A stretch of DNA of 64,000 nt, taken from the NCBI GenBank assembly GCA_965153285.1, contig OZ229111.1. One strand, written 5' to 3'. Source of the DNA: Podarcis tiliguerta (Eukaryota). Numbering within the stretch: position 1 is the first letter of the stretch; the number at the start of each line of letters is the position of its first letter. The notes under the pieces were generated by a model. It was given only the letters and a program-made list of their open reading frames with translations, was not told the origin of the DNA and searched no databases. Shown piece by piece: positions 31,977 to 38,338 of the stretch. Both the position numbers and the translations under genes were made by a program.

Positions 31977-32086
31977 TCAAGAAGTGAAACTTGACTCACT
32001 GTAAACCTTAAAAGACTTTTTCAACGGTGCAGTAACAGGCAACAGTCCAAGTCTACGTTATACCTTGTGGCTGCACCCATGATTTT
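31977..32086 (-). pseudogene. GLUD pseudo-exon 13 equivalent (terminal exon)
   Basis: cttctAG|KIMGAATRYNVDLD, a deletion/frameshift, TVEKVF, a frameshift, then KVYSESSFTS* (TGA at 31979-31977). Compare human [39 protein letters not shown]. Confidence 0.88.
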
Positions 32087-32293
32087 CTAGAAGATAAAAC
32101 ATCTTGTCCTAAGTCAAAACTTAAAAAATGGTGGGTTACAAGGAATTAATGCCAATGAGCACTATTCTGATGATATTATAATGAATGTTATAGAAGAATA
32201 GAGAAGGATATTACAGAGGTATCTGTAGGATAGTGATGGCTTGTCCTGTGAAAATAGTGAAAAGAGAAAAATATTGAGTGAATAGACACCTAC

Positions 32294-32356
32294 CTTGGCT
32301 GAACATTCCACGGTGAAAGCTAATCCTGAGTGTACAATTCCTTTCTCTGAGGCACC
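32294..32356 (-). pseudogene. GLUD pseudo-exon 12 equivalent (63 nt, open, intact AG/GT)
   Basis: ttatAG|GASEKGIVHSGLAFTVECSAK|GTAGGT versus human [21 protein letters not shown] (16/21 identical). Confidence 0.93.
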
Positions 32357-32765
32357 CTATAAGAAAAAAAAAAACACTGTATGGTTTTTAGTTGTATTTG
32401 TATTGCTTTTATTTCTTCAATTGTATTTTATTTTATTGTAATTGCAATACAATATCTAAGTAATAAAATCAGCAGTAAAAATAAAATTGAAAACCATACA
32501 GTGTCTAGCACGGCAAATTAAAAATGCTAAAAGAGGTAGAAAAATCATTAAGCCAAGATGCCCAGCAATTTGGAAATGGTTTGGGCAGGGGAGTTTGAGA
32601 ACCACTGCTCTAAGGACTAGGTGAAATTTATATACAGAAGACTGCACTGAACTACATATTTTAAATGGAGGAGGAATGTCATGGAGAATAGTATGCCCAA
32701 CACACACATCCACATCAAAACTCCAAGATTGTCTCAAACAGGGGAGACCTTGTAGGGCCCACATA

Positions 32766-32991
32766 CAGTGGTACCTCAGGGTACAGACGCTTCAGGTTAC
32801 AGACTCCACTAACCCAGAAATAGTACCTCGGGTTAAGAACTTTGCTTCAGGATGAGAACAGAAATCGTGTGGCAGTGGTGCTGCGGCACCGGGAGGCCCC
32901 ATTAGCTAAAGTGGTACCTCAGGTTAAGAACAGTTTCCAGTTAAGAACGGACCTCCGGAACGAATTAAGTACTTAACCTGAGGTACCACTG
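32766..32991. mobile_element. Tc1/mariner-type MITE, family A, inside the GLUD pseudogene
   Basis: TA|CAGTGGTACCTCAGG...CCTGAGGTACCACTG|TA. Confidence 0.9.
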
Positions 32992-33916: not shown

Positions 33917-36357
33917 GTGGAGTGAGAAACACACTTCAGTTTGTCTAGCCTGACATCCAAGGCAGGAGTTTTAGGGATGCCTAACAGAAGGAAAAAAGTG
34001 ATTAACCTTCCACTGAACCAATGTCTCAAAATGATAAGCTTTGAATTGCTCAGAAAGGCTTGTCCTTTGTCCCACAAGTGGACAGTGTTTCCTTTCTGCT
34101 ATTAATGTTTACAGAAGGGCCCATATCTAAACCACTTGTATCATCTAACATTTTAACTTTCTCTTCACCAGCACTGGATTTAGGGCAGTGTGGATGCTCC
34201 CCCCCCCCCCAGGCATTGAGCCAAGGGGGTGGAAGTTTGAGAAGATTCATTTGGGGGCACTAAATTTTGGCCTCGCACAGGGCACCATATTGCAAAAGAT
34301 TATCAAAGTCTGCCCCTGCTTTCATCAAAATATCAGTTGTATGAACAAACTTTTCTAAGGAAAAATCCACAGGAGCACCGAAAACCAAACATGACAACTC
34401 TGGTAAGAGTGTTCCCTTAGGATGAGAGCTATAGTCAAGACAACAGCCAAATTGACAGCACAACCCGTTCCAGGTTAACTGCCAAGAATAAATAGGAGAA
34501 AGATGAATACAGAATGCATACACAGTAGCTGAGTTCTTCCCCCTGGAGCTCAGAGTTCAGCTCCTGCCTCAGCTGATTTCTTCGAGGAAAATTTAAACTT
34601 GATTTATTGGGCAAGGAAAAACAATTCACAAAGACAACATTCCCCGAGGACCAGAGGGCTTCCCCTCTTAGTTTAATTTTCTTGGCAAGTTAATTAGAGT
34701 AAGCAAAGTATTCCTTGGGGGATTGCTCAGCAAACTTAATTCAATAGAGGTGACTTAGACACGGTTCCTGGTACATGAACAGCTAGCCAAGTTTTTTAAC
34801 CTGAGGGAAGGATTGCTGAGGGGACAAACGTATTTCTCCAGGATTGAAGGGAAACTGGCAGGCTGCCATCTCCTAAACCTGCACAAACAAATGTGTTAGC
34901 AGGATACACATTCTGATGAAAAGCTGGTATCCAAGAGTCCACTGCCCACCAAACAAAATGTTAGTATTATTCACTTAATGATGCCACAAACAACAACAAC
35001 AAATAATTTTGTGGAGTCCAGAGGGGTAGCTATGTTAGTCTGTTGCAGCATAAACAAGAATGCTATAGCACCCGAGACATAGAATAGCAATCAGGTATTG
35101 ATCTAGGATTTCAGTGATCAGGTTCAAATCCCCTCTTCAGCCAGCTATAAAGCACACAGGCTGACTCTTGGCTTCCTGCTGTATTTCAGCCTAACCTACC
35201 TCACTGAGTTGTTGCGAGTGTAAAACGTGGGTGGGTGGGGGAATAGTGAATCCCGCCCTGAGTTCCTTGGAAGAAAAACACAGTACAAATATAGTTATTG
35301 GTTACAAAAGCTTTCATGGGCCACAACTCACTTTGTCAGAGGTCTAATGAAGTTACGAAACCAGGCACACGCCCTGAATAACTTTTATAGTGATTCCCAG
35401 CATTTTGCTGACTTCACATTGGATACCAGTTACCATTCTGAACATTCAATTTGTATCCTTTTATCCTCTTGCCTTGAGAACAGACCTGTTTGACTTATGT
35501 AGATGGCAAAAAGGCATTGTTGGCAGATGCCAGTGTACATTATGTTAGAACACATGCATGTGAATAAGTCATTGATTGTATGGCTGATATTGTTAGCTCC
35601 AGGATGGTATTGCTCAGATAGATATGGGGACAAAGTTGACATGAGTATTTGTTCCTGGGACTTTATTTTCCTTGGGTACAGATGGGAAAGACCTCTGACT
35701 GACACCTAGGGAGCTCTGCCAGTTAAGAGCAGATAGTACTCAGTGAACTGGGGAAATAGTCTGACTTGGTATATGGCAGCTTCTTATGCTCATGTGGGCT
35801 ACAAACTTAATAAAATGTGTAACAGAGAAACGCAAAAGATAGAAGCCAGAGGTAATTTCCTCCAACATTCCAATCTTCTCTCCATTTCATTCTGTCCTGT
35901 TTTCATCATCTCCACTCCATCAATTCAAGCAATGCCAACAAAGACACTTCTATCGTGTACTTTAAGTACATAATACAATGCTTCTAAAACTGTTGGTCCC
36001 AGCATATTCCAGGGTGTGTCATACAAGAAATAACTTTCTTTCACTGGGCTGATAGCACACTATTACAGTTATATGAACCCTTTTGGAGATAGGCTTCCTC
36101 CCTTCCTCCCAAAATATATGTAAATTCTATTCAAATACACATTGCGTATTTATACTGCCATTAAATATGAAATATAATATATATATATATATGTTGTAGA
36201 GGGGTCCCAGTTCAAAGTGTCTGAGAAGCACTGCATACTGTTTTTCTGAGATATGCATTAACTCTTCTGCGTACCTCATCCATACGGTATTACAGTAGTG
36301 CCACCTCCTAGCCTGTTGAGCCCATCCTAGTATTTTTCACATTTGGTACAAACTTAC

Positions 36358-36443
36358 CCACTACAGCACATTTGTATGTCATCAAAGCAGCCAAGGCCTT
36401 TACTTCATCAGTACAGCAGTAACAGCACTGCTGTAACGAATCC
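36358..36443 (-). pseudogene. GLUD pseudo-exon 2 (86 nt, with a 5-nt frameshifting insertion)
   Basis: ctttcccCAG|GG ATT CGT TAC AGC AGT GCT GTT ACT GCT [GTACT] GAT GAA GTA AAG GCC TTG GCT GCT TTG ATG ACA TAC AAA TGT GCT GTA GTG G|GTAAGT. GLUD1 exon 2 is 81 nt. Confidence 0.93.
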
Positions 36444-38015
36444 CTGGGGAAAGATAAGAGAAACAAACAGGCATGTAGTCAGTGACTGTACAACAGAAAC
36501 GTATCAATGTATTTGCATTGATAGTCCTCCCCACCTACTTCAGTTCGAAGGGCTCTGAGCAGCACATATAAAAATGGACAATTTTCTGCTCATGGTGGGC
36601 ACTGAATTTCTAACTATAAAAAAGAGATTGTAGTGTTGGCATAATTAGTTTGGAAGGATGTCATCAGATTAATATAAGGCAGCTCAGGCCATTGTAACTT
36701 CTGAGTTAGCTGGAGATACTTTGTTCCAGTCACATGTCATCGCAATACAAAATAAAATAATTAACAGGAGTTAATTTTTCTAAAGTCACCTTGGAATGAT
36801 GACCTTATTTGATCCTGCTCCCCTTTTCATAGGACACTGAGGATTAATGGGGGGATCTGATTAATTGATGAATAATCTAATGAAAAGGGGGGTGGGAGAC
36901 AGGGAGATTGGACTTTTTAAAAAGGTGTCAAAGGACACATTCCTCCCTACTATTTTCATACACACACCTGCTATTTGTCAGCATGCAACAAAGGTAAACT
37001 CATGTATCTTATGGTGTAGTGGTTTAAAAGCCAATCTCTAACACTGGGTATATTTGTAATCATTTGGTTTGTAGGACTGGTAAGACAGACATTATTACAT
37101 ATATTACAGTTTTATCCAAAATTTCTGTCTCCCCACCCCTGGGGTCCGTTCCCATGGCTTCCCAAAATCAGAAGTGTTTTTATAATGCTAGTTTCAAAGC
37201 AGATGTCAGCTTCTGTCAAGTCCTTCTTTCTAAAACAACCCATCACTTTGTGATTGGATTATAAAAGAGCAATTTATAGGATTGATGGGTGTAAAAAAAC
37301 TAAGACCGTGCTAAGGACCACAGACTAGGAAGCACAGCCCAACTGATAGTAGTGCCTCTATAGTGAGCTAGATGGTAGTATTAACCAAGTAAGAGAAAAG
37401 AAGCAGGATGTACACCACAGTTCAAAGGAGTTCTACTCTTGGAACCATACTTATTCACATTCTTGCAGGATAGGAATCTTGTCGAGCTGTTGCCATAAGC
37501 GGCAAAAGCAAAGACAAATGCAGTTCACCAGTCCTGTGGCCTGCCAGGTGCTTGATCAATCCTCTCATGTTTTTTGCAGTTCCACCCTTTCGTGGCTGGT
37601 TGGCTGTTTTGCCTGATGGTAACATGTCTGTCAGACCTTTTCCTTTGCTTGTAACAAACGCAAGTCAGTTACAGCAAACACAAACGCAGACACAAATAGT
37701 CTTGTGACTCCTTAAAGACAAACACATTTGTTGCAGCATAAACTTTTGTGGTCTAAAGTCCTCCTTTATCAGATACAGGATAACTGAAGGGAGCCACTTC
37801 ACCTATCTGCTGACGTGTGGGGCTAGAACTCATGCCACAGTAACTGTGCAATCTTATGCATCTGCGCTCCGAATTAAGTTGCATGGTGGTCAGTGAGGCT
37901 CACTCCTAATAATCGCGTTTGGGATTTCACAAGGGTCTTTTCAAATGCCGCTAGCTTTGTTTGGGAAGGTTTGCTTCTGAAACCCTTGCCAACAGAGGCG
38001 CAGCCAGGCTCCCAC

Positions 38016-38338
38016 TGCCTTTGCAGAGTAAGCGGTACTGGCTGTGCTGGGCCCGGCAGGCCTGGATCACTTCCCAGTTGCCGCAATCCCTGCGGAAAGG
38101 GAAGACCACCGCCAGGAAGTGGCCGGAGTCCGCAGCTCCGGATGGCCTTGAGGATCCCATGAATCCGCTGCTCCCGCCAATTCTAGTCTTTGGGACTGTG
38201 GAGCCGCTTCACCAGCAGAATATCTCGACCATGCCCAAGCTGGGCTCTCTGTCCCGCGCGCCTTAGCGGCGTTCTTCCTTCCACCTGCGCAGCACGAGCG
38301 CTTTCCCGCAGGCGGCGGCGGCTTCTCGCGGTCGCCAT
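38016..38338 (-). pseudogene. GLUD pseudo-exon 1
   Basis: Candidate ATG at 38338 starts an Arg-rich MATARSRRRLRE. DREPSLGMVEIF (cf. DREDDPNFFKMVEGFF) lies in a second frame. [28 protein letters not shown] has TAG at 38185-38183. After a 7-nt insertion comes [36 protein letters not shown] weak GTGGGA donor sits at the GLUD1 phase-1 position. Confidence 0.88.

Follow-up and report, generated by a model that had tools for sequence, protein, structure and literature searches.

The stretch analysed here, 64,000 nucleotides of contig OZ229111.1 from the lizard Podarcis tiliguerta (assembly GCA_965153285.1) and referred to below as the window, carries on its minus strand the disabled remains of a glutamate dehydrogenase (GDH) gene adjacent to, and convergent with, SNCB. 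These remains are orthologous to a GLUD1-like paralog distinct from GLUD1, for which PL is used here as a working name and which other sauropsids keep intact. The locus is very probably a unitary pseudogene of PL beside SNCB, and PL itself is most likely the ohnolog of GLUD1 on the SNCB side, retained only in sauropsids. In the lineage of this squamate, a second intron-bearing gene for an animal-type GDH has died: stop codons, small indels, and the disappearance of eight internal exons ended its protein-coding function, and a CpG-island-like promoter stretch survives. For this genome, the state of the gene as a pseudogene, its orthology to PL, and its place beside SNCB are shown, and the origin of PL by whole-genome duplication is inferred.

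The window contains no N, and between positions 38463 and 31977 of its minus strand five stretches translate as animal-type glutamate dehydrogenase in the order of a GLUD gene. The original prediction had named five collinear remnants, and all of them were recovered by matches to the Protein Data Bank (PDB), by a hidden Markov model (HMM) built from intact relatives, or by tblastn. Lesions and splice sites were read directly from the assembled DNA, and all searches and comparisons of the exon remnants were run piecewise. The exon numbers 1, 2, 8, 12, and 13 used here are our assumption, taken from the order of the remnants and general knowledge of GLUD1. Exon 1 (38016 to 38463; PDB, HMM, and tblastn) retains its ATG at 38463-38461, about 125 nt beyond the upper limit of 38338 initially given for the pseudogene, the lower limit of 31977 being correct. 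Three stops, one of them at codon 3, lie in its N-terminal leader and a fourth in 'KD*N'; about 31 nt are deleted after 'EIFC', 7 nt are inserted before 'HFLAV', and the last exon base is A instead of G, followed by GT. The stop-free piece 37954-38208 of this exon matches solved GLUD1 chains at residues 113-149 (PDB, E 5e-9), and the exon matches the HMM of intact paralogs with an E value of 3e-14. Exon 2 (36358 to 36443; HMM E 1.4e-7, tblastn, and splice sites) has both its acceptor, with polypyrimidine tract and AG, and its GTAAGT donor intact, and measures 86 nt against the 81 expected, a 5-nt insertion shifting the frame between 'IRYS' and 'DEVKAL'.

The remaining three remnants cover the middle and the end of the gene. 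The exon-8 equivalent (33788 to 33913, corresponding to GLUD1 residues ~362-400; HMM E 1.3e-8) aligns without gaps over 42 codons, includes one TAA stop, and has lost clear splice sites; the piece 33725-33880 matches GLUD1 residues 368-397 (PDB, E 1e-4). The exon-12 equivalent (32294 to 32356; HMM E 2e-6) is an open frame of 63 nt with an intact AG acceptor and GTAGGT donor, and the piece 32165-32356 matches GLUD1 residues 499-519 (PDB, E 0.014). It is the sole undamaged remnant, as had been proposed, since the other four carry stops or frameshifts. The last exon, 13 (31977 to 32086), was recovered by tblastn and by the HMM in two pieces (E ~0.01-0.02). This exon is undamaged at its acceptor, but the frame is shifted by a deletion after 'NVDLD', and 1 nt is inserted in 'KVF/KVY'. 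The original TGA stop survives (31979-31977), as does the tail 'KVYSESSFT', which squamate paralogs typically have.

Collinear matches to the HMM were confined to these five remnants. When all stop-free pieces of 30500-40500 were searched with hmmsearch --max, no match was obtained at HMM positions 189-364 and 410-510, and low-threshold tblastn for the absent exons returned nothing collinear; exons 3-7 and 9-11, eight internal exons, are therefore missing. One weak match, 'QGGIH' near 35250, was considered as a trace of a missing exon and was not counted, its score being at noise level. In Pfam, ELFV_dehydrog_N was found in two single pieces at 19-20 bits, below the cut-off of 25.3, which would be expected of fragments. 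Both the exon with the catalytic-lysine motif (GGAKAG) and the greater part of the NAD(P) domain are absent and other exons are broken, so the locus is a relic of the GDH family rather than a working member, and no protein function is expected of it.

The identity of the relic follows from comparison with the intact genes. With the PL proteins of Pogona and Hemicordylus as tblastn queries, the alignment of the window began at the start codon and ran on across the leader, and the 'KVYSESSFT' tail was recovered. Identity over 149 residues is 67-71% between the remnants and six intact squamate PLs, and 59-62% between the remnants and GLUD1, the latter within the range of about 50-75% proposed beforehand. 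The poorly conserved leader pieces match squamate PLs only, at 19-20 of 29 residues in one and 17-24 of 39 in the other; GLUD1 reaches no more than 10 of 29. Among 20 diagnostic columns, in which GLUD1 and squamate PL have no state in common, the window has the PL state in 17, the GLUD1 state in two, and another in one; when the sites were defined against all PLs, the PL state was found at 13 of 15. Based on these sequence comparisons, the window gene is a dead ortholog of PL and not a decayed copy of GLUD1. It shares with the intact sauropsid genes the diagnostic residues, the leader, the tail of the squamate members, and the intron positions where these are readable; their open frames, however, run to about 550-580 residues, whereas the window copy is interrupted by stops and frameshifts and lacks eight exons. 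The squamate PLs are 86-94% identical to one another and the window copy about 70%, which implies long neutral decay, and the copy has therefore probably been dead for a long time.

The PL family itself was traced in several steps. A phmmer search with the exon-1 piece against 1.84 billion representatives returned GLUD1 exon-1 read-throughs together with a separate group of intact exon-1 open reading frames (ORFs), marked by the signature 'VLEVAFP' and 'HRLPCKGG', one member of which also matches the window in the leader and upstream sequence. When these exon-1 fragments were combined in a profile whose first sequence was a long one, which let full-length proteins through the length filter, full-length PL was retrieved in duck, golden eagle, and kakapo; a profile of these three proteins retrieved the whole family. 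A search with a full-length rotifer GDH gave only GLUD1-type proteins, and no PL, among the 120 matches listed. Among squamates, the profile search found PL in Pogona, Elgaria, Tiliqua, Lerista, Hemicordylus, and the boa Candoia, and cluster look-up added Anolis carolinensis, A. sagrei, and Phrynocephalus. PL is also present in many turtle species, many birds, and the crocodilians Gavialis, Crocodylus, and Alligator. Representative accessions are XP_003227833.1 (Anolis carolinensis), XP_020646617 (Pogona vitticeps), XP_063152521.1 (Candoia aspera), XP_008172496.3 (Chrysemys picta), XP_019361596.1 (Gavialis), and XP_038042610.2 (Anas platyrhynchos). The expectation that relatives should possess an intact second GDH, functional well into the squamates, was thus borne out, with intact PL in at least eight squamate species as well as in turtles, crocodilians, and birds. 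In contrast, the gene is less hidden than had been supposed: it has stood in RefSeq for years, being named in RefSeq and Ensembl 'glutamate dehydrogenase (1 or 2), mitochondrial-like', and a distant branch of bird and reptile GDH has been remarked on in passing (PMC10652781). Literature searches turned up no paper tying this branch to SNCB, calling PL an ohnolog, or studying its function. While the family has long been annotated, the link to SNCB, the loss in this lineage, and the lysine-to-methionine change described below appear to be undescribed.

In the mature region, squamate PLs are 76-77% identical to GLUD1, compared with 89-95% among GLUD1 orthologs. The two branches of PL differ at the active site. 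In the catalytic-lysine motif (GGAKAG), all 17 turtle, crocodilian, and bird PLs that include the exon have Met (Val in duck) in place of the catalytic lysine, whereas this lysine is kept in 6/6 squamate PLs and in every GLUD1 compared. With the rest of PL well conserved, the replacement suggests an enzyme of altered chemistry or a pseudoenzyme in Archelosauria.

Two side observations concern individual gene models. In the Ensembl PL models of eagle and kakapo, translation continues past the exon-2 donor (GGTAAG) and the next exon is skipped, and the resulting peptide 'GKYKGNVK' resembles the translation 'GKFVPNVK' of the intron start in the window (36357-36320, minus strand). The resemblance hints at a conserved intron 5' end but may be due to chance. 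An 'uncharacterized protein' of the fish Sebastes umbrosus (620 aa) scored 958 bits against the PL profile, although the alignment covers only 29% of the query, at 51% identity. As this protein has additional Pfam domains, its gene model is probably a fusion or contains a repeat.

The age of PL was addressed with a maximum-likelihood tree of 43 proteins (IQ-TREE, LG+C20+F+G4, posterior mean site frequency model). PL forms one clade (100/100), whose internal order, squamates versus turtles, crocodilian, and birds, follows the species tree. Amniote GLUD1 forms a clade without PL both in this tree (99/96) and in a reduced set of 32 rows from which the birds' PL was left out (100/98). In the best tree, PL is sister to all gnathostome GLUD1, and at seven columns PL retains the invertebrate state while all gnathostome GLUD1 are derived; no column informative for an amniote position of PL was found. 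In approximately unbiased (AU) tests, a clade of PL with bird GLUD1 was rejected with the full set (p 0.005). Sequence alone thus favours an old split between PL and GLUD1 without proving one.

Genomic position adds a second line of evidence. The ancestral vertebrate block has been published as MMRN-SNC-GLUD-SHLD-GPRIN, with conserved orientations, and only isolated genes of the block persist near gnathostome SNCB (PMC10451939). In the window, SNCB is complete on the plus strand (440 to 24800), with coding exons near 440-560, 18771, 19406, 22921, and 23715-23747, a stop at about 23745, and poly(A) signals at 24481-24796. Both the motif GGAVFSGAGNIAAATGLVK, which is specific to beta-synuclein, and a C-terminal 'EEYQEYEPEA' are directly readable. 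With the pseudogene on the minus strand, the two genes are convergent, tail-to-tail as originally described, and about 7 kb separates their 3' ends. GLUD1, for its part, adjoins SNCG in convergent orientation. In this genome, then, the GLUD gene of the window occupies the SNC-GLUD slot of the SNCB arm, adjacent to and convergent with SNCB. In birds, PL lies on records of 19-24 Mb and GLUD1 on records of 36-44 Mb, separate and chromosome-sized, so the two are not tandem copies. Because the gene stands at the slot predicted by the SNC-GLUD-SHLD-GPRIN block, PL is most likely the counterpart of GLUD1 on the SNCB arm, its ohnolog, and an origin by whole-genome duplication is, in our judgement, reasonably probable.

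Several observations weigh against this interpretation. Support for the node uniting gnathostome GLUD1 without PL is weak (80/52), and PL falls in a basal trichotomy when the reduced set is used. The clade of PL with bird GLUD1 was not rejected with the reduced set (p 0.092), nor was a clade of PL with amniote GLUD1 rejected with either set (p 0.097 full, 0.31 reduced). The anticipated sister relationship of the intact clade to all gnathostome GLUD1 was thus recovered in the best tree but is not established by the support of the node or by the AU tests. The stem of PL is long (0.46-0.58 changes per site), making long-branch attraction to the base possible. In the profile search, the plateau of ordinary GLUD1 was not exceeded by any protein from outside the sauropsids; with PL found in sauropsids only, an ohnolog origin needs independent losses in cartilaginous fishes, ray-finned fishes, amphibians, and mammals. 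Adjacency to SNCB is shown in this window only, and the lesions of the pseudogene are known from the assembly sequence alone.

Alternatively, GLUD1 may have been duplicated in the ordinary way, at the DNA level, on the stem of amniotes or tetrapods; PL would then have been lost in mammals, would lie beside SNCB by chance, and would be no whole-genome-duplication ohnolog. This would require one duplication and one loss, every PL found is from a sauropsid, and the AU tests retain the clade of PL with amniote GLUD1. Nevertheless, the best trees never nest PL within amniote GLUD1, the seven sites with the outgroup state in PL are derived in all gnathostome GLUD1, and a random insertion must have hit the paralogous slot beside SNCB in the very convergent orientation of GLUD1 and SNCG. 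We regard a stem duplication as unlikely. As the topology tests leave it open, the case for an ohnolog rests mainly on position.

For the window copy itself, the question is whether the gene could be alive and its lesions errors of sequencing or assembly. An intact exon 12, several intact splice sites, and a persisting CpG island would fit a living gene. Against this, at least five in-frame stops and five frameshifting indels are spread over four exons, eight exons have left no trace in a window free of N, and the retained residues are much more diverged than among the intact orthologs, making a living gene very improbable. If the lizard had recently duplicated its GLUD1 segmentally and the copy had then decayed, this could account for the identity of 59-62% to that gene, but squamate PL is closer, the PL state prevails at the diagnostic sites, and the leader and C-terminus are specific to PL; nesting within lizard GLUD1, the result expected of such a duplicate, was not seen, and this origin is scarcely credible. 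A processed retrocopy, as in hominoid GLUD2, has nothing in its favour beyond GDH homology and can be dismissed with near certainty, since the remnants lie 0.2-2.4 kb apart, with AG/GT where similarity ends (exons 2, 12, and 13), which is the structure of the genomic, intron-bearing gene initially proposed.

If PL as the SNCB-side ohnolog is carried further, a fuller scenario can be drawn, to which we would give even chances. PL would be a true ohnolog from the two rounds of vertebrate genome duplication (2R), more than 400 million years old, kept in sauropsids only, and ancestrally placed between SNCB and GPRIN1. Turtles, crocodilians, and birds would have lost the catalytic lysine and conserved a non-canonical enzyme or pseudoenzyme, squamates would have kept the lysine, and at least the present lineage would have lost the gene while keeping an unmethylated, possibly active promoter.

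The last element of this scenario relates to a CpG-island-like stretch at 37901-38700, over exon 1 and the presumed promoter, with a G+C content of 0.60 and a CpG observed/expected ratio of 0.76, compared with 0.24 window-wide. Such a stretch is unexpected over an old pseudogene; it could have stayed unmethylated and active, or could serve another transcript.

Comparison with known GDH genes places PL among several second copies. GLUD1 belongs to the same ELFV dehydrogenase fold family with an animal-type antenna, has the same visible exon layout, and is likewise convergent with a synuclein gene; however, it is a different paralog, linked to SNCG and not to SNCB. Hominoid GLUD2 likewise provides a vertebrate lineage with a second GDH gene, but it is a young retrocopy on the X chromosome that lacks introns, whereas PL has introns, a position within the paralogon, and a far greater age. 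In Drosophila, Bb8 is a divergent testis GDH paralog that keeps enzymatic activity (PMC10652781); it was in the tree of this study that the distant branch of bird and reptile GDH was noticed. Like PL, it is a divergent and faster-evolving second GDH, in this case from an independent insect duplication.

The usual account gives vertebrates a single housekeeping GDH, GLUD1, supplemented by lineage-specific genes such as hominoid GLUD2 and the duplicates of teleosts. A position in the paralogon beside SNCB would give the 'GLUD1-like' genes of reptiles and birds an evolutionary identity and a status worth a name. The SNCB arm of the synuclein block would in turn gain a GLUD member, with a lineage-specific loss documented in this genome, and the loss could be dated through the same lesions in relatives. 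The conservation of PL in turtles, crocodilians, and birds despite the replaced catalytic lysine makes biochemical work worthwhile.

The rest of the window yielded few features. No large GPRIN1-like open reading frame was found in its remaining 25 kb, and six other ORFs of the window gave no Pfam match. Three further CpG-island-like stretches were noted at 3301-3700, 44501-45100, and 56901-57400, with no Pfam match for the ORFs at two of them; an SHLD2-like relic or a GPRIN1 promoter would be candidates for the region downstream of the pseudogene. Two ORFs without Pfam domains, at 15967-16359 (plus strand) and 42429-42794 (minus strand), resemble the C-terminal tails of ORF2 proteins of long interspersed nuclear elements (CR1-like and BovB/RTE-like).

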